In this document: piece by piece, positions 4,739 to 44,200 of the stretch
Numbering within the stretch: position 1 is the first letter of the stretch
Layout of the letters: every line of letters begins with the position of its first letter
Assembly: GCA_003427395.1 (NCBI GenBank)
Contig: BFEA01000001.1
Coordinates: forward strand, 7,977,639-8,041,638
From: Chara braunii
Taxonomy: Eukaryota; Plantae; Charophyceae
DNA: 64,000 nt
Direction: 5' to 3'
Position numbers and translations under genes: made by a program
The notes under the pieces: model-generated
Told to the model about the DNA's origin: nothing
What the model saw: only the letters and a program-made list of their open reading frames with translations
Databases searched by the model: none

Positions 4739-5361
4739 TGTGACATCCAACCTCACGCCCAGCGCAACTTCCTGTTTTCGGAGTGGGGGGGGGGGGGCCC
4801 GAAGTGCGTAGTAGGGGTGTGCCAAGGATTTTAGGAAAGTGGGGGTGGAGTCCTGGGTCGGAACTGAGATCTCCGGTGCCAAGTTCCAAGGGCAGAAATG
4901 CAAGTGGTTCTCTGTGGGGCTAGGTCTTGGGTATGGCCCCTCTCAGGGTTGGGCGGCTAATTTCATCGACCTTGTCGTCTGGGGCGGGTTCGCACTCGGT
5001 GCACGGATGGGACACAGTGGGTACCTCGTCGTTCGAACACCTGTTGCTGGCGAGTCTCACAGATCTCCAAATCCGACGTGGATGGCCTCGGCCGGAGACT
5101 GTGTTCTTGGTGCTCAGCTTCGGAGAGGGTCCGTGGAACGAATCCTGCAGCTCGGTAAGTGTTGTACTTTTGGCACTCAGAGCACGGCCTCCAGGGCCAG
5201 TAGGTGGCTATGGATTCCCAAGGCACAACCGTAAGGTGGTGGTAAGGGAGAAGGAGATAGAAGGGAGGGAAGTTAGTCTCGATGGCGATGAATCTCGGGG
5301 TGTTGTAGTAATCGGGGATTCGAGAATTTCGCCCAATGGCCCGGTGAAAATCCCACGCACA

Positions 5362-8048
5362 TGTGACGCGCAACCTCACGCCCTGTGTTGTCTTTCGTTC
5401 GGAGTGTTAGGCATGCGGAAAGAGGCCCCGAAAAACAGCAAGATGGGGTGTGCCAAGGATTTTTGGAAATTGAGTGTGGGGACACAGAAGGAGCTGAAAT
5501 CCCCCGTGTTGGCCCGATGAATCAAGTCGATTGCTTTCGCGCATCGCGGAAAGCGCGCGCGGGCATGGCGCGAAAAGAGAAAACTCCAAATTCAATCCAA
5601 AAAGTATTGTCGGGCTTCCCACCGGGCTACAGCCCGTCGTTTAGAGCGGAAAGGCTTTGGCACGCTTCGCGTGTCCCGTTTTCGTATCAAGTCTCGTCGT
5701 CGTTCGTCAGTCAGTTCCAAGTCTGACGTGGATGGTCTCAGTCGCGTGGTTCTTTCTTTGTGCTCATCTTCACTCCGCACACGGTAGTGGAAACCCCTGG
5801 ATTCATAGCGCTCAAAACGCTGGCATTCGGTGCATAGAGTGCGCGGCCAGTGGGGTTCTATTGTCGTCCACGAGATCACGATCAACTCGTTAAATGGCAA
5901 CAATATCGAGTAAGGTGGGAAGTGCGTATCGATAATGACAAATCCAGCCTCTACGAACCCTGAACAGTGGTTGGCCGGAGGGAAGTAGTATCGCCCGCCA
6001 ATCTGTGCGACAACTTCTCGTACGTCCCACTCGCATACACGTGTCCTTTCCTCGTTGTAGGGAAAAGGCCGTGTTGAGGCGGGAGGTGCAGGAGGTTGGC
6101 GCCCGATCAAAGGGTGTTTGTCAGTCCACATGTCAATCAATTGCAAAAACCTCGAGACGTCCTCATCAAAAGAAAAGAAAACACTCGCGCAACTCACAAT
6201 CAATCCCTTTCGACATCNGCTTGATCNTGCANATAACCNAGAGACCGATCCGCAGCTCAGGTTTAGTGAGCCAACGCGACGTTGATCNCAGNCGCCTTGT
6301 TTCTCCAGNCCGCCCCGTTGATCGGTGGCAGATGTCGTGCAGCATAAGGCAGATGGCATGCGCAGTGCATTCAGAACTACAGATCTAAACACTCTTGCAT
6401 TCTCGGACAAAATCCCGACGACCATCGTNTAATCAACNCAAAAGAAAGTCACTCATTTCCATACATACATTCACTGTGGAAGGTGCGAAAATGAGACATG
6501 CATATGAAAAGACGGGTTGCTTGAACAGTACGCACGCATCCACCGTTCACAAGACAAAAGGANCAATNCCTCGTCATCTGGGGATTACCCAGGAAACTAA
6601 TGGAAGAGTTTCGGAAGAAGTTCTTTCACGNTGAAGAGNACACAGATTCATTCAAAGGAGAGACAGACATCGAGACACATCATNATTCAAGGATAGAGGA
6701 GAGAGAGGNAGGTGAGGGAAGAGAGTTGAGATAGAAGATGGNACAATCCAAAAGATGGAAGTTCGGCGTTGNCGCCGTGCACTCACTCNAGAGATAAGGG
6801 TCCGCAACAACAAAGGCGCATTCGNCGTTAATTCCAATATGGCCCCAGGCCAATCACTCACTCCACTCCAATCATCGATCCTCATACCCGCACTGACGAT
6901 CCCGANCGTCGCGTGCTAACTTCCACCNCTGAGATCGTCACCCCGCTGTCGTAGACTCGACACGGCTCGCCCAGATCCCACAGTCCGTCGTNGCGATCAA
7001 GNGNGCAACCGGCCAGCCTATCGTCANCCCGACANGACTTTTCGACTCGCATCAAAACACTCTGCCTAGCCACTGCTTTCCGGAAGNTGGCTCAGGAGTC
7101 GAGAACGTAANNGAGCTTTGCGGACGCGCTTGCGGGTTTTATAGTTGCGACAANGGAGATAGAAGGNGGAGAAGGCGANGGGAAAGNTGGGGTGTAAGAG
7201 GGGAAGCAGGAGGAGAAGACTTTGAGAGGATTGCTCTGTGAATGCCATGTTGATCCCTCGGAACTCAAGGTTCAACCAATCAGATTNGTCNCGCAATAGG
7301 AAAGTCCTATTGATCGGCGTACCTGATTGGCGAGCGGGAGTTATCGACGGATCAACCGGGCNTCGTGCGTTGGACTCAGAGGGTGAGGAGAGAAAAGGCG
7401 CNAGAAGTAGNGCNANACGGGTCCAAGATTCAGATGATCAAGAAAGGGAATTGGNCNCGCAAAAAGNGAAGCGGGGGANAGAGAGAGNGAGGGAAAAACA
7501 GTTACGAGGAGAGAGAAAGAGGAGGGAGAANGGGGAGGGAGNGATGCGGGGGTCAGAGAGGAGAAAGCTTTTGCATGCGNGGCGCCGTCAACAAAAAGAA
7601 AGAAAAAGGCACCAAAACAGTTACAGCTTGCCTCTGTCATAATTCAAAAATTGAAATCACCATATNCGCGCGCNAAAAAGNGACGCGGGAAAAGAAGATC
7701 CTACGCCTATTNGTATTCGTGCAAAATTCCGAGAGTTTTCTCCAANGCGACCNAGAACATTCNCACACAAAAAGGAGGCGTCGAAGTTCCGCTTATCCCG
7801 GAATTCCCAACTGTCGGACCCAATTCCCAGTGCGCTCGCTAAGGCGCACGCAATTTNCTATGAATTTNCCGAATTGCAAGAAAAAGGAAAAGCAGAACCC
7901 GAGAATCGAAAAAGGCTTCTGAAAGATGGGGGCCAAAAATGCGGCATCCGAAATCAAGAAAACGAAACGGGGCTTTTATGGGGTCGGTATGGTACAAGCA
8001 AAAGAAGGGTACGAAAGATAGCACGGGTTCGGGAAGTGGTTCGTCACA
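5362..8048 (-). repeat. 3' LTR of family A element (includes terminal block 5362-5372)
   Basis: 5371-8048 is near-identical to 16771-19448. Confidence 0.93.
5592..6200 (-). CDS. LTR-embedded ORF of unknown function with CxxC motif (3' LTR copy; true start uncertain)
   Basis: Part of ORF 5592-6452. Its translation aligns with ORFs in solo LTRs B and C. Confidence 0.6.
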   Translation of the reverse strand: MVSCASVFFSFDEDVSRFLQLIDMWTDKHPLIGRQPPAPPASTRPFPYNEERTRVCEWDVREVVAQIGGRYYFPPANHCSGFVEAGFVIIDTHFPPYSILLPFNELIVISWTTIEPHWPRTLCTECQRFERYESRGFHYRVRSEDEHKERTTRLRPSTSDLELTDERRRDLIRKRDTRSVPKPFRSKRRAVARWEARQYFLD

Positions 8049-8600
8049 TATGTGACGCGCAGGGGGTTCCAAAATTATGCGATCTCCTGATTGCATGTCA
8101 TGGCGGAGAAGGAGAGAGAGAGAGAGAGAGAACAGAGTGATGCATGAGGAACCAAGCGTATCAACAAACGATCCAGCCAGAGTCCATGTTGACGCCAGTT
8201 TCAATTGCAATCTTCTGTCTGTTGCTGGAATCCTCGATGGTCATCCAGGTGATGCCATCATCGTCCGCTGGTTCTCCGTGTGCTCTGCACCCCAGCTGGT
8301 TGCTGCCTGTCGAATCAGAGTGTAAGTTGACGTCATCGTCGATGGCGTGATCTTTGCGAATGCTTACTGATTCGTGTCGTTTTCCCCCGCTGATTGGATG
8401 AAGANNNNNNNNNNNNNNNNNNNNNNNNNNNNNNNNNNNNNNNNNNNNNNNNNNNNNNNNNNNNNNNNNNNNNNNNNNNNNNNNNNNNNNNNNNNNNNNN
8501 NNNNNNNNNNNNNNNNNNNNNNNNNNNNNNNNNNNNNNNNNNNNNNNNNNNNNNNNNNNNNNNNNNNNNNNNNNNNNNNNNNNNNNNNNNNNNNNNNNNN

Positions 8601-9226
8601 CTCCTAGTTGGAATGGGCCAATAGAGGCGGTACATGGAGGGGATTTCACGGGGTCGACGGGGAGGGAGTGGGGGTAGGAAGCGATTCATTCCTTCCATCG
8701 TCACCGGAAGCTCCTCATATCGGATGATCCGGTGGAAGTGGGGGAAGTAATCGCCGCTGCAAGGGAGGGAAGCGAGGTAGTCGCGATAGAAGGAGGAGAG
8801 GGTGCGGAAAAGTGCCGCCCGAAAGAACTCATAGTGGTGGCAGGCGGGGATTGTCCCCGTGGCAACGCAGTAAACCTCTACCACGTTGCATCGCTCCCAT
8901 GCAGCGCTGAACAGCAGGAGATGCCAGCAGAACGTGGGGGCAGCGGATGGAAGGGAGGCGTGGGGGTGGACGGTAGCGAGTAGGCGGGTAGAGTAGAAGT
9001 CGCGGAAGAGATGGGGAAGGAAGGGATGGGAAGGGAAGGTGACGGGGGTACGGATCTGCTCGAGGGTGAGGAAATCAAGGGGTCGGCGGGACAGTGTCCG
9101 AGGACGAAGGCCTATCGCCCGCATCGGTACGTGGGCGAACTGGGGGACGGGTGGGGCTGGAGGAGGAGGAGGATCGGCTCCGTCTCCGTCGCGCGGTACT
9201 TGAGGTGGCGGCTGCAGGGTCGCCAT
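8601..9226 (-). CDS. Putative accessory ORF 3 between IN and 3' LTR (Pro-rich N-terminus; runs into a gap)
   Basis: From 'MATLQPPPQ' within ORF 8333-9460. More than 200 codons open with globular composition; no recognised motif. Confidence 0.4.
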
Positions 9227-9923
9227 CTTTGGGCTTTGGCGGGTCCGGGTCCCTGGTCGGGTCGTTGCCGATGCGCAGGCTGGCTCCGCTGGCGAACTCC
9301 AGTTGTCGCTTTCCGGTGGAAATTTCTTCGCGCCTTCGCGCCGCCTCCGGATCTTCCGCCTCTGTTCCCGTGCGCGCCGCTTCCTCCGGCAAAGCTTTCC
9401 ACTCGGACTCGGTTCCTTCTTCTCCTTCCTCTTCTTCTTCTTCACTCGGCTCGCCCTCACTATACTCGCTATAGCTTCCCTCCTCCGATGTTTCCTCGTC
9501 CTCGTCTTTTTCGTCGTCGTCGATCACCACTTCCTCCGCCCTTGGATAAAAGGTGTGAGGGATGATATCGTACGGCTTGAGATACTCCTGCCGCGATGGT
9601 AGCGTATCCTCGTCCCTGGGTTCCTCCAAGCACACAGTCCACTGAAGGTACGGATCCAATGATCGCTCAAAAATGTACGGAGCAGGACTGTCGTCACTCT
9701 GGGAATAAATGTCGGGTGAGAGATCGTCCGCCAATTGCACGGTCGGTGCGATGAGCTCCTGCGCAATTAGCTGGCGGTGCCCCGGCTGTATCGATCCAAA
9801 GAGAAAGCCAAGAAGATCGCCCTCCACGTTAGTCCTCCAAGCTTGGATGATTAGCAGCTCCGGATTTTCGATCCACGCAGGATGCTCGCTGGTCTGCGTC
9901 CACGTCACTTGTACTCTGGCCAA
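9075..9923 (-). CDS. Putative accessory ORF 2 (globular N-terminus, acidic tract, Arg/Ser tail)
   Basis: 282-aa ORF preceded by a polypyrimidine tract plus TTTCAG (~9988-10060, minus strand). Confidence 0.5.
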   Translation of the reverse strand: MARVQVTWTQTSEHPAWIENPELLIIQAWRTNVEGDLLGFLFGSIQPGHRQLIAQELIAPTVQLADDLSPDIYSQSDDSPAPYIFERSLDPYLQWTVCLEEPRDEDTLPSRQEYLKPYDIIPHTFYPRAEEVVIDDDEKDEDEETSEEGSYSEYSEGEPSEEEEEEGEEGTESEWKALPEEAARTGTEAEDPEAARRREEISTGKRQLEFASGASLRIGNDPTRDPDPPKPKDGDPAAATSSTARRRRSRSSSSSSPTRPPVRPRTDAGDRPSSSDTVPPTP

Positions 9924-10150
9924 GCAGAAAGACAGCTCCTCAAAAGTTTCGCGCCACAGCCGCCAATGTCCAGGATTGATAAGAGGGACTGAAAGAGGCT
10001 CGAACGAGAAGGAAAGAGAAGGATGGAGATCGGATTGCTAGAAGGTGGGGAAGAGAGAGGAGAGACCAAAGATAGAGAGAGGAGCGAGAAGATCGGCGTG
10101 GTGCATTGGGGATGTGGGAAGGGGACGAGGGTTGGGATCGCAACTGGCCG

Positions 10151-10615
10151 CTAGCGTGGTGATCGGCGAATATCGCCAAGATCCGGTGCAAAGATCGGGA
10201 TGAGGTTATACCCAGGTCGGGCGAGGACGTGCTGCCACACGTTGGACACTTGCTCCGTCCACTCGCACAGCAAGGTCAAGATCGTGGTATGCCACTGCGG
10301 ATTGACCGAGCTGATGTCGCCGCTGAACGCCGCAACCGTGGTAATGTGGCTCGTTCTGGGAGCCGCTCGCCGATGAACTGCGGTTACCTCTGCGAATACT
10401 ACTGCGTGAGAACTTCCTTCGATTCGAAACGCGGCGGCGGCACAGATACCCTCGTCGCAGAAGAATCGCATCAAAAGCTGAAGATCCGTATTGAGCCGAG
10501 GGTGACAAACTTGCCGAATCTCTAAGATGTGGCCACGTGGCTGCAACAGCTTTGCGTCAAGAACCCGCTCCGTGATGAAACTCATGGCGAGGTGGGGGAG
10601 GATGTCGAAGGACAA
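10151..10615 (-). CDS. Putative accessory ORF 1 immediately after integrase
   Basis: 154-aa ORF with protein-like composition. Its internal Met overlaps the IN stop region. Confidence 0.4.
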   Translation of the reverse strand: MSFDILPHLAMSFITERVLDAKLLQPRGHILEIRQVCHPRLNTDLQLLMRFFCDEGICAAAAFRIEGSSHAVVFAEVTAVHRRAAPRTSHITTVAAFSGDISSVNPQWHTTILTLLCEWTEQVSNVWQHVLARPGYNLIPIFAPDLGDIRRSPR

Positions 10616-12312
10616 GAGGGAGAGAGCGGAGAGAGAGTTAGATCGTCGTCGTTCTCCTCGCTTTCCGAGGAAGAAGAGGGAGGAAGATCGGAAGGAGGAA
10701 GGAGACGGAGGTAGGAGGTATGTCGAACGATGGGGACAGAGCTATGGCTGGTGCTAGCCTCAGGCGCGATGCGCACCGTGTTGGCGCCGTTAGGACCGAG
10801 CTCGACAACGCGAAAACAGCCAGAGAACTTGGGAGCGAGTTTTCGGTCGTGTGCACATTTACGTACCTGCACTAGGTCCCCTAATTTATATTGATGTTGG
10901 GGCCCAGCATTTCCGTTCCGAGCCTCGTAACTACGGACCTGTCTACCGTGGGTCAGTTCGGTCATCCTTTGCCTTTTTCGGGCTAGCTTCGGGACGGCCC
11001 GTTCCATTAATTCGGTATACCTTTTGGCCTTGGCCTTGAGGGCTGCACGCGTGTCTCTGCCCCCTGCTTCGGCAATTTCCGAGCTACACCGGTAGTCGGC
11101 ACAAGGGAGGCTATTAGTTCGAAGCTGGAAAGGGGTAAACCCCGTGGACTCGTGGGGGGTGGCCCGGTGGATTCCGACGATCTGATATACAATCTCAGGC
11201 CACGGACGCGTGTCATGTGCCGCTAAGTTCCTGCGAAGGGCGGTTTTAATCATACGGTTGGCATTTTCGGCCAACCCGTTCGACTGGGACACGTGGGGTG
11301 CCATATGTCGGAGCGTGACGCCCCTTCGCGCAAGCAGTTCTTCTACCTCACCTTTGAATTCAGACCCATCATCGGTTAGAATTTCTTCCGTATCTAGATG
11401 GGTATAGAGGAACCGATCGATGTGCTTGGCTATTTCTGCGGCTTTTCGAGTCTTACAGGGATAGACTTCGATGTATTTGGAAAAATGGTCTATTAATACT
11501 AACAGGATAGAATATTCACAGCAGTTTGGGCCAGGTGGCACGTCGATATCTGTCGTGTCCATACTGACTCGCTGAAAAGGACGCTCTACTTCCGTTGGTA
11601 CTATCGTGTTTGGTCCCCGAATTGGGGCGCGATCAGCGGCACAAACCAGACAGTTGGCAACAATGTATTTGACATCATCTCGTATATTGAACCAGAACCA
11701 TCGGTTCTGGTCTACAGTTGCCTCCGTGACACGTATCGCGAAATGAGCGGCCTGTTCTTCGTGAGCAGATCGGATCCAATCGTATCTTTGGAATGGATGG
11801 GGAACCGTCAACCACGCACCCGATCCATCAGTTTTATGCTTTTTCAAATGACCGTTGATCCATCGGTAGTCCCGAGATCTCTCGGTTGCCCTACGTCTGG
11901 CGTGTTTGGTGAGGTGACCCAATGATAATCCTGCTAATTTCGCCAGTAAAATTTTATCCGTCCAAACCTCCGCTCGTCAGTATTTTTTGTCGTATTCCGG
12001 GCCGTCCGTACGGGTGGCCTCGAATCGAAGCTCCGTGGGGAGTTTGTTCGTTCTACAGAGAGGACACCTCTATTCCTTGCTACTCGTCCGATATCGAACG
12101 CAGGCCCCGTGCGCACGATTGACACACGTGGCACATTCTACCCAATCGACAAACCCGGTTTTGAAAGGATGACAGTCGACCCCATAGACCCGTGCAATGC
12201 ACGTGCAAAAATAACAGAATTTATCGGGGAGGGTGGCAAAGAAAGCTGAGGACGTGAGAGGAGCAGAATTAGTAGGAGACGAAGGGGTTGCGGAGGCAGG
12301 TGGGGTAGTCAT
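10582..12312 (-). pseudogene. PHD finger-integrase fusion ORF (two in-frame stops at presumed Trp codons)
   Basis: 12312-12070 and 11922-10582 are the same frame. PHD: CYFC..WVECATC.4.H..C..(W)RCPLC. IN: HHCC (HEEQAAH..CLVC), 'VSMD', 'LTDDGSEF', 'SNGLAENANR', GPY/F-like 'KLAPKFSGCFRV'. Confidence 0.88.
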
Positions 12313-12337
12313 GATGGTAGAGGAGGAAGGGTTGGGA

Positions 12338-12373
12338 CTGTATTACAGAGAGGGTAGAACAAACAAATTAGTC
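12338..12373 (-). promoter_or_regulatory. Putative branch point, polypyrimidine tract and 3' splice acceptor upstream of PHD-IN
   Basis: Minus strand reads GACTAAT-ttgtttgttctaccctctctgtaata-CAG between the RNase H stop and the IN ATG. Confidence 0.55.
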
Positions 12374-12383
12374 CTCGTGTCGC

Positions 12384-13800
12384 TTACTGCTTCATCAGGA
12401 TCTCCACTTGGTCGTACCGAGGTCCGGTCTTCTGTTCGGGTTCATTCCACGGAATCACCTCCTCGTTCTTGGGAACTTTCTCGGGCCGGTGTAGTCGGGT
12501 CAGCCCGTCCGCATTCCCGTGTCTCTCGTGCTTCCGATGACGGATGTCAAAGTCCATGCTCTGCAGCACTGTTGGCCCATCGCCCGATCATGCTAGAGTA
12601 ATCCTTCGATTTCTTCAGAGCCAGCAGGGGCTCATGATCAGTTACCAGAGTGAACTTTCGCCCGTACAGGTAAGCGCGAAAGTGATTGATTCCCCAGAGA
12701 ACTGCGTAGCATTCTCCTGTTGGAGCGGCGTAGTTGCGCTTGCAGGCGGGCACTGATTTGGACGCATACTCCACCACGCTCTCGAGTCCACTTGGCCCCA
12801 CCTGGGCAAGGATCGCCGAAATTGCCTCGGGCTGCCAGTCGGTGATGAGAACAAAAGGCTTTTCGGGATCCGGTCTTATAAGGACCAGAGCCGAAATGAG
12901 AACGGCCTTGAGCTTGGAAAACGCTTGATCACACTCCGGCGTCCAGATCAACGAATGATCTTTACGTAGCAGATTTGTGAGGGGTCCTGCAATCGCCGCG
13001 AAGCCCTGGATAAATCTTCGGTAGTACGAGGCCAGGCCCAGAAAGGCGCAAACTTGCGTGATAGTCGTAGGCACCGACGCATCCCTAAGAGCGGCCACCT
13101 TCTGCGGCTCCGGTTGGAGCCCCTTATCACTCACCATATGTCCCAAGAAGGAAATGGTGGTCAGAAAAAACTGACTCTTCTCGAGCGCCACTTTGAAACC
13201 CGCATCCCGTAGCGTGTGCAGTGCCCATTCGATGTGCTGCACGTATCCCTCGTAGGAACTTGAGTACACCAAGATGTCATCCATGTACACAATTACGAAG
13301 TAGTTGATGATGCTCTGTGCCAAACGAGTCTTCCACACGAAATTATGAAAAGCCATGTTCATGGCTCGCTGAAAGGTCGCGGGGGCGTTGCAGATACCCA
13401 TCGGACATCGAATCCACTGCCACGTTCCCTCGAAAAGCACAAATGTTGTTTTCGGACGATCTTCTTCTCGAACAAGAAGATGATGGAACCCATGGCGAAC
13501 ATCAAACTTGCTGAAAAATCGAGCACTCCCAATCGCATCCAACAACTCATCAATCCGGGGGAGGGGGTACACATCTTTGATCGTGATATCATTCAACTTT
13601 CGATAATCAATGCAAATGTGAATCCCTCCGGTGTTTTTAGGCACGATCACTACGGGAAAAAACCAGGGACCTATTGCGGGTTCGATCCATCCATTAGCTT
13701 CGAATTCTTTAATCCGCTGAAAGCGGCTGCTCGTTGAGCTGGCGAGTATCGGTAAGGAACGCAGCTAATGGGTGGGTGGTCTCTCGTGAGAATAGCATGT
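12384..13800 (-). pseudogene. pol: Gypsy reverse transcriptase-RNase H (frameshifted)
   Basis: 'CIDYRKLN', 'YPLPRIDELL', 'PMGICNAPATFQ', 'YMDD', 'FLGLASYYRRFI', 'LVTDHEPL', 'GNADGLTR'. Confidence 0.95.
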
Positions 13801-13804
13801 TCAA

Positions 13805-15523
13805 TCACATAGTTAAGCCGATGTCATTATCTTCTATGCTCAATACTTCCGCGTAACTATTTAACACGCAGATTAACGATTTCCGAAGCTCCGCGGGGAC
13901 TTGACCTGGTAGGGTGATTGTTGGTCCCCCGAAAATCTCAAGGGGCATGTCGATCCAATCAATCGGCCATTCCCGCCGATCATGGATACTCGAGAAAACG
14001 GAACTACTGGTGCGAACAGAGAAGACAGTTGCTATCATCTGGGACTCAGCGGGGCTGATCATCTCCGTTTCCTTAGTTTCAGCATCAGTCTCTGAACCTA
14101 CCGAGGTTGGTTTCACAGTTAGCCCCGTCAGTTCCGTCATTTCTTGCATCAGATCAGGTACATCACTTACCGGTGCTTCCGCCTCCTGTTTAATCAAGGC
14201 GATGGTGGCTCCTGTCGTTAGTAATGATCTAGGCGGAAAAACAGAAACATCCAAATACTGTTTCGTTTGCTGATAACGCGTTCGTAAGGAGAGAGCTCCT
14301 TCGTACAGGGTGCGAGGGGGTTCCAGATCATCGGCCAGGTCGGATACTTGTAAAAGGGGTTCCCCGATCAGGACTGAAGGGCTAACTTGGGTCATCGGAG
14401 GCGTAAGTGCGCTGTCCGTTGAATCCATGTGGAAGCTTCGAGCAGTGTCCGGACGTACTTGGAATTCTTCGAGAATTTCGTGTTCGAAAAGTTCGACAAG
14501 GTGCCTCCATTCATCTTCGCTAGGCAGCTCTTGTTTGTATTCCTGTTCCGCGATTCTACTATCGATGTCGAAAGAAAAACATTCTTCGGGATTAGTGGAT
14601 CGAATCAGCCCTATTTGGGCCGGGTTAGGGGTTTGCTTTATCGTTCGGGTGGAAATTCGCAAGGGAATAGTTTGGGGCTTTCCCCCAGTTTGCGTGAGCA
14701 CCAGTTGTTTTGAATCGAAATGCAGTCGTGCGCCTACCGCCATCGCCCAAGGTAGTCCTAACAACACAGAATAGGAACGTACATCTATCACGAGCGCGTT
14801 GACAAGGACGTGTACTCGTCCGACTTTTACAGCCACATTCTCGATAATGCCCACGATGTTCATTGCTTCCTCGTCGGCAGAGACATAATGGTCTTTGCCA
14901 GATAGAGGAAGAATGGCTCCAAGTCGTCCTGTCTTTTTGACAGTGTCTAATGATATGGCCACTGCAGAAGATCATGTGTCGATAAGGGCGTCGAACGGCT
15001 TGCCCCACACCTCACAGTCACATTCCGCGCTTTTCCATAGTACCGACCGAGCTCGTACGAAGTGATCTTTTTCTGCTCGAGAGATCGTTGCTATACGTGC
15101 GGCTTCGGGTTCAGGTTTCCTTGTATCGGGAGATGCAACTTCCTCGTCTCCTTCCTTCCTTTTTAACATTCGCTGTATACGGTGGTACGTGAAGCGCGTT
15201 TGATTTTTTTGACAATGTTGTAAAAGTTTATCATTTGCATCTTCGGATATGGTGAGCAAATGTCCTACCGGGATAGGAACGCGAATATCTAGTTGCTTGA
15301 GTGTTTTCAATACATCAATGTCCCCTGTGCGAAACTGCGGACCAGGATTGGATTCGTGATCGACCCATTCGAGATCATCCGGGGCCGATCGGATCGCTCC
15401 GATCATGCCTGCGAGATGAAGATACTCAAGTGGATCGACCACGTCAGCGGCGTCGGAGGAAGAAGCTCCCGATGTCGACGCCGTTGCCAATGAGGGGAAC
15501 GGTTGTTCTGGGGCATATGCCAC
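13805..15523 (-). pseudogene. Aspartic protease region and long linkers (catalytic DTG mutated to DT*)
   Basis: 'ALIDT*SSA' and 'VLLGLPW'. Same frame as gag. Confidence 0.85.
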
Positions 15524-15589
15524 GTGTTCTCTTCACTGGTCCGTATCCATCAAAGCGCCCACTCGTCCTTGGTTCAGGGCGACAGGGGC

Positions 15590-16723
15590 CGCAGCAGGTG
15601 GAGGCTGATTACGCTTGGGCTGCGGACAGTCTCAAGCAAAATGCCCGGGCTGTTTGCAGTTAAAGCATTTGATTTTTCTTGTTGGATTAGGTAGATGAGG
15701 GAACTGAGGTGCGTACCTCGGAGCAGGCGGGGCAGGCAAGAGTGGAAATGGCGCAGGGGCGGGCCGAGCAGGGGCCGGGTTGGGCTTGATTAGCCTGCCC
15801 ATTATCTGTTTCATCCGCTCCATATGAGCGGCCTGCATTTGGATCAAGTTGCTCATCCATTCGGACTGCTTCGTAGTAGCCGTATGGATCGTCTGAGTAA
15901 GATGTAAGTTGGTTATGGCCGGCAAGGGGGGTTCGGGTGAGATTCCGCTTTTAACTGCCGCGATCGATTGATTCACCGGGGGAGAGGAAGAAGAAGCAGG
16001 CGGGATATCGGAAACGATCCCGCCGGAAAGGTCATGGTCGGGGCGGGGATAAAATCGTTTGACCGCCTGCAACCACGACCGCCTTTTAGTCGTTAGGTCC
16101 CGTATGGTATCTATAATATCTTCGTCTCCCTGACTGATATATTTTTTTGTATCAGCCAAGTCCAGTTCCAGTACTTTATCAATGATAGTCGATAACTGGT
16201 GTATTTTCGGTGGGACTTTTTTCTGCGGTTTCCCTTTCAATGTCGGACTTCGTAGGTGATCGATCAACAAATCTTGAGCGGATTTCTCGTCTCGCCCGGA
16301 TTTGTCCAACGTGGTTTGAAATCGATCCACAAAATCGGGCAACAATTCCCCTGGTCCTTGGGGCCAATTTTTTAGCACGTACCAGGCGGCATCTTCACTG
16401 ACCGTATCGAATCGAGCCAAGAAGGCTTGTTTGAAAGTATTCCAATCTACCCATGTATGTTTTCTAAACCAGTCATGCGACGTATTGCGGAGTAGCAATG
16501 TCAGAACGCGGGGAAGATCGGCGGCGCTGTAGTTTTGAGCTTCGACAGCTTCCAGCCAAGCCTCGGGATGGGTATGGTTAGGGAAGAAAGGGAAGGGGGC
16601 AGGGATGTTAACGATCACTCTAGTACCGTCCACCATTGGTATTGAGGGTGCAGCCGTACCAGATTGAGACCTGGTGACAGGGCGATCTCGATGAGCCACT
16701 TGAGGATCTCTCCTACCTCTCAC
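15590..16723 (-). pseudogene. gag: Gag (capsid plus CCHC zinc knuckle, stop inside the knuckle)
   Basis: 'WNTFKQAFLARF', 'QGPGELLPDFVDRF', 'CFNCKQPGHFA*DC'. Confidence 0.9.
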
Positions 16724-16759
16724 CAGTTCGACTTACTATCATCAGAACCGATACGTGTC

Positions 16760-16772
16760 GGCTCCGATACCA
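16760..16772 (-). promoter_or_regulatory. Primer-binding site (tRNA-iMet)
   Basis: Minus strand TGGTATCGGAGCC directly abuts the 5' LTR. Confidence 0.9.
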
Positions 16773-19448
16773 ACCTCAAGCCCTGTGTTGTCTTTTGTTC
16801 GGAGTGTTAGGCGTGCGGAAAGAGGGCCCGAAAAACAGCAAGATGGGGTGTGCCAAGGATTTTTGGAAATTGAGTGTGGGGACACAGACGGAGCTGAAAT
16901 CCCCCGTGTTGGTCCGATGAAGCAAGTCGATTGCTTTCGCGCATCGCGGAAAGCGCGCGCGGGCACGACGCGAAAAGAGAAAACTCCAAATTCAATCCAA
17001 AAAGTATTGTCGGGCTTCCCACCGGGCTACAGCCCGTCGTTTAGAACGGAAAGGCTTTGGCACGCTTCGCGTGTCCCGTTTTCGTATCAAGTCTGGTCGC
17101 CGTTCGTCGGTCAGTTCCGAGTCTGACGTGAATGGTCTCAGCCGCGTGGATCTTTCTTTGTGCTCGTCTTCATTCCGCACACGGTAGTGGAAACCCCTGG
17201 ATTCATAGCGCTCAAAACGCTGGCATTCGGTGCATAGAGTGCGCGGCCAGTGGGGTTCTANTGNCGTCCACGNGATNACGATCAACTCGTTAAATGGCAA
17301 CAATATCGAGTAAGGTGGGAAGTGCGTATCGATAATGACAAATCCAGCCTCTACGAACCNTGAACAGNGGTTGGCCGGAGGGAAGTAGTATCGCCCNNCN
17401 ATCTGTGCGACANCTTCTCGTACGTCCCACTNGCATACACGTGTCCTTTCCTCGTTGTAGGGAAAAGGCCGTGTTGAGGCGGGAGGTGCAGGAGGTTGGC
17501 GCCCGATCAAAGGGTGTTTGTCAGTCCACATGTCAATCAATTGCAAAAACCTCGAGACGTCCTCATCAAAAGAAAAGAAAACACTCGCGCAACTCACAAT
17601 CAATCCCTTTCGACATCNGCTTGATCNTGCANATAACCNAGAGACCGATCCGCAGCTCAGGTTTAGTGAGCCAACGCGACGTTGATCNCAGNCGCCTTGT
17701 TTCTCCAGNCCGCCCCGTTGATCGGTGGCAGATGTCGTGCAGCATAAGGCAGATGGCATGCGCAGTGCATTCAGAACTACAGATCTAAACACTCTTGCAT
17801 TCTCGGACAAAATCCCGACGACCATCGTNTAATCAACNCAAAAGAAAGTCACTCATTTCCATACATACATTCACTGTGGAAGGTGCGAAAATGAGACATG
17901 CATATGAAAAGACGGGTTGCTTGAACAGTACGCACGCATCCACCGTTCACAAGACAAAAGGANCAATNCCTCGTCATCTGGGGATTACCCAGGAAACTAA
18001 TGGAAGAGTTTCGGAAGAAGTTCTTTCACGNTGAAGAGNACACAGATTCATTCAAAGGAGAGACAGACATCGAGACACATCATNATTCAAGGATAGAGGA
18101 GAGAGAGGNAGGTGAGGGAAGAGAGTTGAGATAGAAGATGGNACAATCCAAAAGATGGAAGTTCGGCGTTGNCGCCGTGCACTCACTCNAGAGATAAGGG
18201 TCCGCAACAACAAAGGCGCATTCGNCGTTAATTCCAATATGGCCCCAGGCCAATCACTCACTCCACTCCAATCATCGATCCTCATACCCGCACTGACGAT
18301 CCCGANCGTCGCGTGCTAACTTCCACCNCTGAGATCGTCACCCCGCTGTCGTAGACTCGACACGGCTCGCCCAGATCCCACAGTCCGTCGTNGCGATCAA
18401 GNGNGCAACCGGCCAGCCTATCGTCANCCCGACANGACTTTTCGACTCGCATCAAAACACTCTGCCTAGCCACTGCTTTCCGGAAGCTGGCTCAGGAGTC
18501 GAGAACGTAANNGAGCTTTGCGGACGCGCTTGCGGGTTTTATAGTTGCGACAANGGAGATAGAAGGNGGAGAAGGCGANGGGAAAGNTGGGGTGTAAGAG
18601 GGGAAGCAGGAGGAGAAGACTTTGAGAGGATTGCTCTGTGAATGCCATGTTGATCCCTCGGAACTCAAGGTTCAACCAATCAGATTNGTCNCGCAATAGG
18701 AAAGTCCTATTGATCGGCGTACCTGATTGGCGAGCGGGAGTTATCGACGGATCAACCGGGCNTCGTGCGTTGGACTCAGAGGGTGAGGAGAGAAAAGGCG
18801 CNAGAAGTAGNGCNANACGGGTCCAAGATTCAGATGATCAAGAAAGGGAATTGGNCNCGCAAAAAGNGAAGCGGGGGANAGAGAGAGNGAGGGAAAAACA
18901 GTTACGAGGAGAGAGAAAGAGGAGGGAGAANGGGGAGGGAGNGATGCGGGGGTCAGAGAGGAGAAAGCTTTTGCATGCGNGGCGCCGTCAACAAAAAGAA
19001 AGAAAAAGGCACCAAAACAGTTACAGCTTGCCTCTGTCATAATTCAAAAATTGAAATCACCATATNCGCGCGCNAAAAAGNGACGCGGGAAAAGAAGATC
19101 CTACGCCTATTNGTATTCGTGCAAAATTCCGAGAGTTTTCTCCAANGCGACCNAGAACATTCNCACACAAAAAGGAGGCGTCGAAGTTCCGCTTATCCCG
19201 GAATTCCCAACTGTCGGACCCAATTCCCAGTGCGCTCGCTAAGGCGCACGCAATTTNCTATGAATTTNCCGAATTGCAAGAAAAAGGAAAAGCAGAACCC
19301 GAGAATCGAAAAAGGCTTCTGAAAGATGGGGGCCAAAAATGCGGCATCCGAAATCAAGAAAACGAAACGGGGTTTTTATGGGGTCGGTATGGTACAAGCA
19401 AAAGAAGGGTACGAAAGATAGCACGGGTTCGGGAAGTGGTTCGTCACA
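16773..19448 (-). repeat. 5' LTR of family A element (ends ...GAGGT, no terminal CA)
   Basis: Direct repeat of 5373-8048, adjacent to the PBS. Confidence 0.92.
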
Positions 19449-21288
19449 CACACAACCGGTCGTTCTCATTCTGGCAAGGATATGTCGGGAGCCTCGAATG
19501 TGATTGGCGAAAAAGTTGTTCGTTCTCCCAGTATCTTCGATACTCGAGATTCCTCAGACTGGCACGGTCAGTGATCCAGAATGGGACGCCAATATCCATA
19601 TTTGGCAGGAGGGACTTGACTCATACATTTGCCCGCGCAAGGAGGAAAGGTGTTAGGGACGGGTCATGCAGACACGCGTATACGTGATGACTGTTGTTAT
19701 GGTAGTCATTCGTATGCGTGTGTGCACATGATCTGTTTCCCGGATCCGAATCGACCTTATAAATCAAATGGTTGTCGACGGGCAAAAAGGAAAAAGGAGA
19801 GGAAATAACTTTCCCATGCGTCAGACGTCAATCACACGGGGATTATGTATGAGGAAGATCCAATTCATGCTAAGGCCTATACACAGATCGTATCCTACAG
19901 GTTACGCATGTATCTATTCCGACCCGGGTTTGTTGGGAGAGACAACTTCGACAGGGTTAACGCAAAACCACACTGTCGATCGCTTCCGCATATACAAAGG
20001 CATGATCATTCCAAAAGCGGGCGGGATTACATGCATGTCTCCATACATCCGTACTTCCACAATCGACAATCCTTCATGCAAGTCATTTGAGTGATCAATC
20101 AATTTTTAGAGATCGTCATACATTCTGCATAAAAAGAAAAGGGACGGAATGGGGAGGGAAAAAGGCTCCATACGTCAATCAAAGTAAAGGAAGGAAAGTC
20201 CAAAAGTGCCGCAAATGAGAATTGACAAAACCAAAGATCAAAATTACACAGAAGATGCGAAGAAATAACACCACTTCAACACACCGCACCCTCTCTCTCT
20301 CTCAAAGTTCCCATGATGCGGGCAGTCCGTCGCCTCGCACCCACCAAGAACCTGAATTTGTCATCCCGCTTAGTCTGACACACGCAAGTCAGATTCACCC
20401 GTGTGCCACAGTCCTTCGCAGCCACACGTCAACCCCGCATACCCAGCACGATAGCACCAGCTCGTCAGATCGCCCAACTTCCTACTCACCTTTTTGTCTC
20501 CGTCCGTTCGCCGATCCTCTCGACCACGCTAACTCCCAAGTGTGGATTAGAGAGCGAATTAGTCGCGTTTGCGAGCTTTATAGCAGTCGGTAGGTGCGCG
20601 AGGTAATCCCGGATTATGTTGAAGTGAGAAGTAGAAAGGAGGAGGGAGTGTCTACGGGTGCATGACGGGGCCGCGGCGTGGGGGACGTAGCCGCTCTCCA
20701 CGCATCGATCCAGTCATGCACCTGCAGGCCAATGAGATAGACGGGAAAGAGACGCAGAGAAACTTCGCGCAGCAAAAAAAAAAAAAAAAGGAGAAGAGAT
20801 CAAGAAGTGAGAGGATTACAGTTACATCTGCGCTCATCAAGAAGGAGCAAGAAGAGATTGCAGTTGCGATTAGAATTTAGGCGCGGCGGGGGCAGAGCCC
20901 AGGACAGGACGGAGTAATGCGTGCGCACGTAGGAAGCACCGTACGGTTACAGCGACAAAAGTCCGTGACAAATTACGACGCCCCTAATTCCTAAATCAAC
21001 CAAGGTCTTAATTCTCGTAATCCTTCGTATTTCGAATTAAAAAAAAAAAGGATTTCCCCGCGCAATGATCGTGCCAAAATTTCCCTCCCTCCAACAGAAC
21101 AAGAAAGAAGCTATGGCAACAATTATTTTCACGCTCGCTAAGGCGTAATCAATAACCAAATGTCGTGGGACCAGCCTTTTTCCAAAGGACGGGGGCATTC
21201 ATGTAGTTGGGCGGACCCTTCCCGATAACCCCCGAAATACAGTTGCGTAGAAAGTCGCGCGTTCATAGAAAGTAGTTCGTCACACCAG

Positions 21289-41205: not shown

Positions 41206-44200
41206 TGCAGCATCTTCCCTTTTGGAGACCAGTTTTATCAACAGTCAATCCGGAGCTTTACCGGAGCAGCCAGCCATTGTTTGGAAGTTGGTGTCGATTG
41301 AAGTTGATGGCAGTAGACCATTTCAGGCTTGGGAAAGACTCCTAGGCTCAGAAGTTTTGCAGCCCTGCTGCACAGAATCTGGATTGGGCTACAGCAGGCT
41401 CTTGGCCAACTTGGTCCAGGTAAGAGTTAGTGAGGAGTGTGGTGAGGATAGAACCTGGACATTCGTAGTCTTGGGCTGAGGGAGCCCCGATCCAAACGTT
41501 GCGGCTGGACTCCAAGCTCAAGTCTTGGCGGGGCTCAAGAAAGTTTCCACATGAAGTCTGGCTTTCGGATTGGCAGAGTAGGACAAAGATAGCTTGAGGT
41601 AGGCTTTTGGGGGGAACAACCTCTTTTGAGGGGAGTAGGGTAGAGGGAGGCTTTCCTATTGTCGGGGCTGTGAGGAACCGCTCAACAACAGAGAGGTTCT
41701 GATTAGCGGAGGCAGCAAGGGAGAGGAGGAGTGGTAAGAGGGGAAAAGAGGAGGGGTGGACAGGGGAGGGTCAATCAACATCAAGTATCATCATCATCAA
41801 CATCATCATCATCAGCATCAGATTGGTTGTTTGCTCAGGATCCCACTATTATCAGATCCAAATTCTTAGGTTACATTCTAGTTTTTTTTTTCTTTTTTTT
41901 GAAACAAGCTTCATCTATTGGTGGGGAGCAGCACCTGCTGGAAACCGGGTCCAGCGTCCCATAGATACAACCATATCCTCACAAATTGGCACAAACTGGG
42001 AACCGGGCCCAGTGTCCCATAACAAGTACATTCATCCCAAATTTTCATTAATCATCAATGTATTCCAATTATAAGGGATGTTGGGCCCGGTTCCCAGCAC
42101 GTGCTGCTCCCCACGAATAGCTTGGAGCAATTGCTTTGGAAAAAAAAAAAAAACTAAGTAGGGGAGTATGAGTTGTTGCACTCCGGAAGAACACCAACCT
42201 TGGTTGTTGTAAGTAGGTGGCCGCAGGTCTGCCCCTCACATGCAGTAAGTATCAATCAAGATATTAGCACATGTTGGGTCAAAATTCAAGGGTCCAATTC
42301 TCATAGCAATCTCTTGTGGTGGTTGTCGCTATTGGCTACCCCGTTGGCAATGTGGCTCACCAAATGAGGAATGATCCCGATCCAGTGTTATAGGTGCAAG
42401 TGGTTGTTTGAATCAACCACTCACTTGTGGATATACTGTCCACTCTCACTAAGAATTTCGACATGGTGGAGAATCCAATGGGCTTGCATCAGCGTTTTCA
42501 ACTAGGATGGTCGATGGATTCTCTTTGGCAGTTTTCAAGAAGGTTTGGCTCTGGAAGGTTGGGGTTGCGGTGCTCAACCTCACACCCCACAATGCTTTAC
42601 TTTACGGAGCGGACTAAAATGCGAAAAGGACCCGAAAAGCATGCAATGGGGCGGTGTCAAGGATTCTAGGAAAAGGTGAGTGTGGAGTCCCACATCGGAA
42701 CTAAAATCTTCCTATGGTCGAAAACGACGACGAAAGGCGAAGTGGCGGGCAAGCAACGTCTATCTAAGTCAAAAAGTACCTTTGAACATCGTCTCGTGCT
42801 CTACAACGTTTTTTTCCAGCCGGAACGGTGGAGAGGTGTACGAAATATCTCGACTATGGATGAGTGCTCGACAACAGGTCCCAAAGAGCTCAAAATCGGA
42901 ATCAGAGGGGAGCAGACGTGTGCCTCTGTCCGCGACTTCTGAGTCTCCATGAGGCATGTAGTCGAACCCTCTCGCCCTCGATCGTTCCGCACAGCGACAG
43001 TCAAAACATAGTGTATGGAGCCAATGAGGCGCAACAGTTGTCCACATGATGTTATGTCAATAAACTCATTAAACGACAGTAGTATAGAGTGAGGAAAGAC
43101 AATGTCCATAATCACAAACTGAGAGTTGACAAAGGAAGCACTGCATCTCATAAGGGGACTAATATGGTCGTTCGATCCGTGCTACAGAGTCTTGCACGTC
43201 CCACTCACATACACATGGTCGTTCCTCGTTGTATGGAAACTCCAGACACGACATGGGATGTTCCAGCGACAATGAAGCAAATGACAGGGATGCTCAGGTA
43301 AACATTGTAGGAGGAAGAGTTAGCAAAAGACAAAGAGAACATCCATGACACACATCCAATGTTTACAAACACAACGAACCCTCATATTTAGGCAGGCGAG
43401 GCGGATGCGCATGTCACTTAGTCATCGTTGCTCTTTAGTGCAAGCAGAAGAGTATAAGGGGAGTGCTATACGCATTCGTCTTGCGAATCCTAAGGACTCC
43501 AAAAATGAATGACTACCACATACACTCATGTAAGCAGAAGAGTCTCCGTAGTGTTTTGCTCGCCACAGACTTGTGCGGATATGTAAAACAAGAGATGATC
43601 TACAAAGGAAAATTCCTTTAACTACCATTTGTCGGCGCATCTAATCCAGACTACCGATCATTCATACAACTTAACTAAATCACATCGATGAATAAACCAT
43701 GCATTCAAATGTGAAACCGTACATTTACCTATAAAAGATTCATTCCATTTCATGCAACGATGCATAATTGAACAAAATGACTTCAAAGAAAGTTAGCATA
43801 AATTTCAACCATGAAAAAAAATCGAGATGTTCTCACGCTTTCAAAAGTATCAGCACTCTACGCCTTTTTCTTGCAAGTGAAAGAATATAACGGGAAACAC
43901 TCAAAAGAGAGAAAAGCAAAGAAAACTCACTGGCACTCACTCAACGATTGTCATACATTTATTTATTCATGCGGACGAGATCGTGAGAATCATAAATAGG
44001 AGAACCATTCGAGAGCGAAATAGAGATAGAAGAAACTGGTGTTCCGCCATGCAATCACTTATTCATCATAAATTAAAATAACGAGAGAGAGAAAGAAAGA
44101 GAGAGGGAGAGAAGTAAGACATGGGTCCATTGGCTCTCATATCTATGGCGCCCTGGCTAGCCAACCAACCACCATCTCTTACCCTGCCTAAGTATCTGTG

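Follow-up and report, generated by a model that had tools for sequence, protein, structure and literature searches.

How can a retrotransposon rebuild its right-hand end when that end lies outside its long terminal repeats (LTRs) and is encoded only once inside it? The question is raised by a Gypsy element on the minus strand of a 64,000-nucleotide stretch of Chara braunii DNA (contig BFEA01000001.1 of assembly GCA_003427395.1, positions 7,977,639 to 8,041,638; hereafter the window). The element ends in an 11-nucleotide sequence (11-mer) that is not part of the repeated LTR and that stands once more just ahead of the 3' LTR (Table 1). We found that this split-end layout is the design of a very high-copy Ty3/Gypsy clade, and not a one-off or a misassembly. 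Because the single internal 11-mer lies outside the LTR, ordinary reverse transcription cannot regenerate the right end; the textbook two-jump scheme alone is insufficient, and an extra end-joining step is needed. Integration from an end-to-end junction of the circle type would fit all of the anatomy, and we consider it plausible, with the balance tipping slightly in its favor.

On the sense strand, the repeats in the window are 2.68 kb each and read TGTGACG...GGC(G/T)TGAGGT. The 5' LTR begins with TGTGACG, finishes with ..GAGGT and passes into the primer-binding site (PBS) TGGTATCGGAGCC without any gap. The 3' LTR finishes with ..GAGGT, followed by TGCGCGTCACA (5372-5362) and then by the flank. 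A search of the 64 kb found the exact 11-mer at two sites only, 8061-8051 and 5372-5362. The 11-mer has the pattern TG-N7-CA, and over its last 7 nt it repeats the LTR start in inverted orientation; the internal 11-mer, the bases TA and the LTR start form a perfect 16-bp CA-TA-TG palindrome at 8042-8057. The integrated layout is LTR-PBS-internal region-hairpin-GGAACCCCC-11mer-NA-LTR-11mer between 4-bp target-site duplications (TSDs). A first-pass annotation of the window had described a 5' LTR that meets the PBS without the terminal 11 nt, a right end encoded once, directly upstream of U3, where it forms one half of a CA-NA-TG palindrome, the perfect match of that palindrome, and a TSD of CACA (plus strand). 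All of these were confirmed by direct reading of the minus strand.

Table 1. Positions of the element, its parts and its insertion site in the window (minus strand = sense strand of the element)
Feature	Position	Strand	Remark
Gypsy element	5362-19448	minus (sense)	14.1 kb, gag-RT-RNaseH-IN
Right-hand TSD copy, TGTG on sense	5358..5361	(-)	matches 19449-19452; empty site reopens frame
Terminal 11-mer TGCGCGTCACA, right-hand integrase attachment end, outside the repeated LTR	5362..5372	(-)	
3' LTR, TGTGACG...GGCGTGAGGT	5373..8048	(-)	2676 bp
Two-base spacer TA between internal 11-mer and LTR start	8049..8050	(-)	palindrome center
Internal 11-mer	8051..8061	(-)	
GGAACCCCC, non-purine motif in the polypurine-tract slot, candidate 3' end of plus-strand primer	8062..8070	(-)	
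Conserved hairpin, 7-bp stem, AGGA loop	8078..8095	(-)	7 nt upstream of GGAACCCCC
Assembly gap	8405..8600		true missing stretch ~40 nt, homopolymer-rich
Integrase open reading frame (ORF), zinc-binding domain and rve core	10582..11922	(-)	Pfam: Integrase_H2C2, rve
Reverse transcriptase-RNase H ORF	12547..13650	(-)	Pfam: RVT_1 8e-30, RT_RNaseH_2 2e-26
Central GGAACCCCC copy in coding sequence (..EPPRTLYEG..), possible central plus-strand primer	14316..14324	(-)	
gag ORF, CCHC knuckle	15632..16723	(-)	Pfam: Retrotrans_gag, zf-CCHC
PBS TGGTATCGGAGCC, directly after 5' LTR	16760..16772	(-)	
5' LTR, ends ..CTTGAGGT, without 11-mer and terminal CA	16773..19448	(-)	
Left-hand TSD copy, TGTG on sense (CACA on plus strand)	19449..19452	(-)	
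Older solo LTR of a related family, host of the insertion	4739..21284	(-)	TSD CTGG both sides

The internal region bears out the earlier assignment to Gypsy elements with a DDE (Asp-Asp-Glu) integrase (IN). The domain order is reverse transcriptase (RT)-RNaseH-IN, and the catalytic D, D and E are present and aligned with those of the prototype foamy virus (PFV) integrase (E=6e-11), which is the best solved match, and of the Ty3 IN (2e-9). No tyrosine recombinase of the Phage_integrase type was matched in Pfam among the nine internal ORFs. In the window copy, the reading frames are interrupted between the ORFs. The PBS is one base off TGGTATCAGAGC, the standard plant PBS (PMC7215508); the copies of the element carry TGGTATC(A/G)GAGCC, the A form being identical to the standard sequence, and several copies match it exactly. 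We therefore take the PBS as a probable site for the initiator methionine tRNA (tRNA-iMet). No tRNA genes were found in the window or the fetched loci described below.

The insertion site shows that the 11-mer belongs to the element, as the first-pass annotation had it: the TSD TGTG stands outside the 11-mer, and removal of the element together with one TSD copy leaves a 99-codon open frame spanning the site. When the flanks (5200-5361 and 19453-19600) were compared, the restored frame aligned across the junction to a homologous ORF in the element's own LTR (E=5e-10, 30% identity). The host of the insertion is a solo LTR that begins with TGTGACGAACTAC and finishes with GAGGT-TGGATGTCACA, with the TSD CTGG on either side. 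Since it keeps the LTR, the 11-mer and the TSD, the LTR plus 11-mer form survives as a solo LTR. The LTR of the element itself has an ORF of ~200 codons at 5592-6200 (also 16992-17600), and the insertion lies inside the homologous ORF of the solo LTR. A candidate for a further related LTR end at 42577 (GAGGT-TGAGCACCGCA) could not be linked to any LTR start and was set aside.

We then fetched loci around integrase homologues and read their junctions (L001-L011, ~250 kb in total). The close protein relatives were all from C. braunii, with the related loci in assembly GCA_003427395.1, and the nearest RT relatives outside Chara were only ~40% identical. All three junctions were present in L001, L002, L003, L005, L007 and L009, and some of them in L004, L006 and L010. 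Every 5' LTR seen read GAGGT directly followed by TGGTATC, the exception being GAGCT in L001. Every 3' LTR was preceded by GGAACCCC(C/T)-11mer-NA, the spacer between the internal 11-mer and the LTR being TA, TT, GA or CA in the other copies. The readable 3' ends consisted of GAGGT-11mer and then the TSD (ACGC, GGGC, GCAC; AGCC/AACC in L005). In all, 4-bp TSDs were found at five insertions (TGTG, ACGC, GGGC, GCAC and CTGG, the last that of the solo LTR).

Within each element the internal and terminal 11-mers agree, bar one or two point differences in old copies. Both are TGCGCGTCACA in the window and in L003, and both are TGGGCGTCACA in L007; the internal and terminal copies are TGCGCGTCACA and TGCACGTCACA in L002, TGGGCGTTACA and TGGGCGTCACA in L005, and TGGCCGTCACA and TGGGTGTCACA in L001. 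In 7/7 elements in which both could be read, the two copies share one type, either TGC.. or TGG... A second family (L004, L009 and L010; 52% IN identity) has TGCGTATCACA ahead of an LTR starting with TGTGATA, and in L009 the internal and terminal 11-mers are both TGCGTATCACA. The palindrome is CGTCACA-TA-TGTGACG in the main family and TATCACA-NA-TGTGATA in the second one. Thus, where the LTR start differs between the families, the last 7 nt of the 11-mer differ to match, which is the behavior expected of an integrase attachment end. As a control, a Gypsy family in the same genome (L011, 43% RT identity) is canonical, with ...CCTTGCA at both LTR ends, TT between the CA of the LTR and the PBS, and a purine tract AAGGGGGATGGAA directly before TGTGAGG. 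Taken together, the three-junction layout in eight copies (the window copy and seven others) at independent loci, single junctions in further copies, four 11-mer variants, two families and a canonical control in the same genome demonstrate a family-wide design. The expectations that each terminal 11-mer would track the element's own pre-LTR copy, and that each 5' LTR would abut the PBS without CA, hold in the fetched loci.

Two 3' ends carry extra T residues at the border between GAGGT and the 11-mer, GAGGT-TT-TGCGCGTCACA at L003:15728-15755 and GAGGT-T-TGCGTATCACA at L009:15580-15605. L009 has no matching TSD, and its flanks (2430-2495 and 15600-15650) are alike over ~30 nt, which points to a repeat as the insertion site or to later recombination between copies.

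What stands in place of the polypurine tract (PPT)? The sense strand ahead of the 3' LTR reads TTTTGGAACCCCC, followed by the 11-mer and TA, with no purine tract. The earlier statement that the PPT is missing is correct in that the slot has no purines, but the slot is not empty, as it holds a conserved hairpin and GGAACCCCC. This motif ends exactly at the 11-mer start and abuts the 11-mer in all copies; its first eight bases are invariant in nine aligned elements of two families, and the ninth is T in L007. Among the same nine elements the hairpin lies 7-9 nt upstream of the motif and has an (A/G)GGA loop. Its stem is paired in 93% of cells, compared with 19-48% in slid controls, and 3/7 pairs have compensatory changes, which distinguish three lineages. 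The sequence GGAACCCCCT also occurs mid-element in every element, within codons for ..EPP... In seven elements the central copy is at a homologous place, where 4 synonymous sites are invariant and neighboring codons vary; in L001 and L007 there is a second central copy, which continues into the 11-mer's first 7 nt. A search inside the elements for a pairing partner, the complement of GGAACCCCC, found nothing consistent.

A central copy of the plus-strand primer is also found in lentiviruses and Ty1. The hairpin, GGAACCCCC and the central copy together appear to form the pattern that a plus-strand primer should look like, though not a purine tract. As the 3' end of the motif is at the 11-mer, the first base of plus-strand DNA would be the first base of the 11-mer. 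The plus-strand start 13 nt upstream of U3 that the first-pass annotation had postulated gains support from this position of GGAACCCCC.

The element can now be placed among known systems. It shares with canonical Ty3/Gypsy elements (Metaviridae), including L011, a CCHC gag, the RT-RNaseH-IN order, a DDE integrase, a tRNA-iMet PBS, long LTRs starting with TG, a short TSD and an element end of CA. Unlike these, the Chara split-end 5' LTR lacks the terminal CA and the element's last 11 nt, the right attachment (att) site has a single coding position, flanked by the plus-strand primer slot and U3, there is no purine tract, and the two-jump scheme cannot make the LTR pair. It is a Gypsy element that fails two hallmarks of its group, equal TG..CA LTRs and a PPT.

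The A..B-A-B layout, where A is the 2.68-kb LTR, B is the 11-mer and the internal B-A encodes the joined ends, matches the A1...B1-A2-B2 order of PAT/Ngaro/DIRS elements. Despite this split-repeat layout, the element is not a PAT/Ngaro member, since it has a DDE integrase, with an intact triad, and TSDs. Unlike those elements, it has no tyrosine recombinase, its TSDs are 4 bp, its B is only 11 nt, and its use of PBS and LTR is otherwise retrovirus-like.

How, then, could the right end be rebuilt? From the anatomy we propose the following route. The genomic RNA (R to R) would contain the internal 11-mer only. Minus-strand synthesis primed by tRNA-iMet would give a complementary DNA (cDNA) with ...GAGGT as its right end, and a plus strand primed by an RNA ending in GGAACCCCC would make the cDNA LTR 11mer-TA-LTR, with the 11-mer as the left end. 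The standard reverse-transcription product would be 11mer-TA-LTR-PBS...11mer-TA-LTR with ...GAGGT at the right; in terms of sequence, the predicted linear cDNA starts with TG(C/G)GCGTCACA-TA-TGTGACG and ends with ...GGCGTGAGGT (plus 0-3 nt). Joining of the U5 end to the left end would follow in one of two ways: the ends would be ligated into a 2-LTR-type circle, or RT would switch template once more via the TG/TGG common to the PBS start and the 11-mer start. The join product would be ...GAGGT-11mer-TA-TGTGACG..., in which integrase would cut both strands of the palindrome after CA, and the two recessed CA-3'OH ends so freed would be inserted with a 4-bp stagger. The conserved GGCGTGAGGT may be part of the right-hand att site and may single out the joined palindrome for cutting; the internal palindrome has GGAACCCCC ahead of it instead. 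The integrated form equals the cDNA with the 11-mer shifted from the left to the right end and the TA lost, as expected from end joining followed by a palindrome cut. The microhomology between the PBS and the 11-mer, which had been offered earlier as a means of joining, is real: TG is common to the two in all copies and TGG in most subfamilies, but the match is only 2-3 nt long.

There is precedent for the cutting step. The PFV integrase cuts a palindromic LTR-LTR junction in vitro, CA-AT-TG, with 2 nt between CA and TG, and so yields two processed ends (PMC1180852), and for HIV-1 there is also a precedent for integrase cutting a palindromic LTR-LTR junction (PMC1905944). The Chara element, with CA-TA-TG, has the same 2-nt spacing as PFV. 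The systems differ in that the PFV LTRs are complete and the junction exists only in circles, whereas in the Chara element one half of the junction is already built into provirus and RNA, and the element's right end cannot exist without a joining step.

Several points weigh against integration from a joined end. The junction LTR-11mer-NA-LTR was not found in the window or in L001-L011. No junction molecule was prominent among the loose ends listed (20 of ~450) for the read-derived contigs, which drop rare forms. Permuted insertions (LTR-11mer-TA-LTR-PBS...11mer and then flank), which would be expected if the internal palindrome were cut, were not found either. Indeed, a circle would carry two nearly identical palindromes, and discrimination between them by their flanks is an assumption. 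Neither a transcript start nor a poly(A) site showed up in the LTR portion of 5100-6217, the region compared with reads. The accepted substrate of retroviral integration is linear DNA, and the circle route of PFV is contested. To our knowledge, a primer of the GGAACCCCC type, ending in a pyrimidine, has no precedent.

Regardless, we still regard the end-joined route as plausible. A more far-reaching form of it is that the whole clade depends on end-joined (circular or concatemeric) cDNA, with integrase acting as a site-specific nuclease on a half-pre-encoded att-att palindrome and with plus-strand synthesis from the hairpin and GGAACCCCC; we put this forward tentatively, and it may well be wrong. 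Two subsidiary ideas were rejected. A 1-LTR circle as the main precursor predicts insertions that end in the 11-mer and have no 3' LTR, but 9/9 internal 11-mers precede an LTR. The extra T residues, a hint that the join arises anew in each cycle, were not accepted as proof of a de novo join, as those copies are old and rich in indels and the read data show no indel there that reaches the 10% listing threshold.

A linear route without a circle could also give the observed structure. The intasome would cut the left-end palindrome and insert both the element body (TGTGACG...) and the freed 11-bp duplex (...CGTCACA), and host end joining would finally connect ...GAGGT, the U5 end, with the 11-bp piece at its free end. 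This would yield exactly the observed product, TSD included, and would need no palindrome other than the one at the left end, given by the proposed plus-strand start. The extra T at the border of GAGGT and the 11-mer in 2/8 3' ends (L003 +TT, L009 +T) would suit a repair join, although in such old copies the residues may be later mutations. We nevertheless consider the linear route unlikely. An 11-bp duplex is a very short integrase substrate, each insertion would leave a chromosome break for repair, and the join at 5372/5373 is tidier than end joining predicts, with no indel reaching the 10% listing threshold in the reads. The conservation of GGCGTGAGGT would be left unexplained.

The right end could alternatively be made before the cDNA is complete, by a primer translocation like that of hepadnaviruses, in which the 11-nt direct repeat DR1/DR2 is used for strand transfer. 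A short minus-strand copy of the internal 11-mer (..CA/..CCA) would move to the U5/PBS border, pair with UG/UGG and be extended, so that the minus strand would start with the 11-mer complement and the linear cDNA would already end in GAGGT-11mer. The 11-mer complement ends in CA in all copies and in CCA, as in a tRNA, in the TGG subfamilies, and the PBS offers it a possible pairing partner in its first 2-3 nt. Against this, every copy keeps a 12-13-nt match to TGGTATCAGAGC (PMC7215508), which argues for a tRNA primer, nothing is known to prime on the internal 11-mer, and removal of 13 surplus bases from the left end would still be required. We regard this explanation as very improbable. The likeness to hepadnaviral DR1/DR2 (a short direct repeat for transfer) and to the lentiviral and Ty1 central PPT (a central primer copy) is an analogy of logic only, the enzymes and genome types being different.

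Finally, a one-off rearrangement or misassembly of a canonical element, to which the identical N positions in the first 2 kb of the LTRs (a sign of collapse) and the nearby gap might point, is for practical purposes refuted: the three junctions recur on other scaffolds, at independent loci whose TSDs differ and whose sequence has diverged, contigs of the sequencing runs span the flank, the 11-mer and the LTR end, and the gap is collinear with a gap-free copy.

That gap-free copy is L003, collinear with both flanks of the gap at 8405-8600. The 63 nt of L003 at this place correspond to 25 nt plus the gap in the window, so that ~40 nt, not 196, are truly missing; the stretch is rich in C and T homopolymers and lies 340 nt from the 11-mer, touching no junction. 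Two family copies have a gap at the same place (window 8405-8600 and L002:12751-12935), where L003 has a C11 / T9 stretch; this homopolymer-rich site points to a systematic sequencing or assembly problem. Over the first ~2 kb of the LTRs (window 6218-8050 and 17618-19450), N occurs at 56 identical positions with one mismatch, and the last 400 nt of the two LTRs have 19 mismatches. Because the identical N pattern indicates a collapsed consensus, the LTR identity (98.8%) is unusable for dating.

The comparison with reads and contigs covers 5100-6217, and the window junctions at 8050 and 16772 rest on the other copies. Two run contigs (5259-5386 and 5265-5386) contain flank, 11-mer and 14 nt of LTR with zero differences; they enter the element by 25 nt only and are probably from the data behind the assembly. 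In two DNA runs, the match of 29 and 25 contigs breaks off exactly at 5362, beyond which they lead into unrelated flanks, and the LTR is vastly more abundant than the flank. Further contigs branch off into the PBS at 5371, because TG is common to the PBS and the 11-mer. RNA reads connect U5 with the PBS, and thus genomic-type transcripts exist. At window position 5372, seven reads of RNA run X9 exit the LTR into a variant end, on the sense strand ...GAGGT-TAGTGCGTCACA-TGCGACC...; these reads stem from read-through of another copy, whose 11-mer region differs.

We found no published description of the split-end design in the full-text literature, the coverage of which leaves out most subscription journals and the Repbase reports. 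The two-jump scheme with identical LTRs is taken as universal for LTR retroelements with a DDE integrase, and the provirus of this highly successful lineage contradicts it. As the sequences predict both cDNA ends, the exact junction and the integrase substrate, the missing step is directly testable. The design bears on the old question of LTR-LTR junctions as integration substrates and on what can replace a polypurine tract. If end-joined cDNA were indeed obligatory, the long-discarded route with a circle as precursor would be the normal route of one lineage. For annotation, the design means wrongly placed ends, in elements that are a major component of the genome, wherever an LTR-finding tool insists on TG..CA, a PPT and equal LTRs.

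A possible relative outside the C. braunii assembly was found in locus L008:6800-8175 (JGI metagenome 3300071516, contig Ga0620986_24075), which encodes a PHD-integrase fusion with 39% identity to the Chara pol P0002. It has a purine tract AGGGGGGAGGAAGGA followed by TGCTACA-TA-TGTGACG and, ~1.3 kb further on, ...GTTAAGGA-TGCTACA-TA; a 14-mer, AAGGATGCTACATA, is repeated. A 15-mer from this locus hit 120 loci in metagenomes, none matching past the 15-mer, and these are chance matches. The locus, with its 5' LTR off the contig, could represent the same split design outside that assembly or a canonical LTR whose terminal direct repeat is 7 nt long.

Two further observations concern gene content and nesting. 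In the window, the ~2.5-kb stretch between the integrase ORF and the 3' LTR has ORFs of 280-375 codons at 8601-9923, without a Pfam match. At L011:10311-25800, two diverged internal regions (79% identity) have a common middle LTR; the resulting tandem array has the order LTR-internal-LTR-internal-LTR, and other elements are nested around it.

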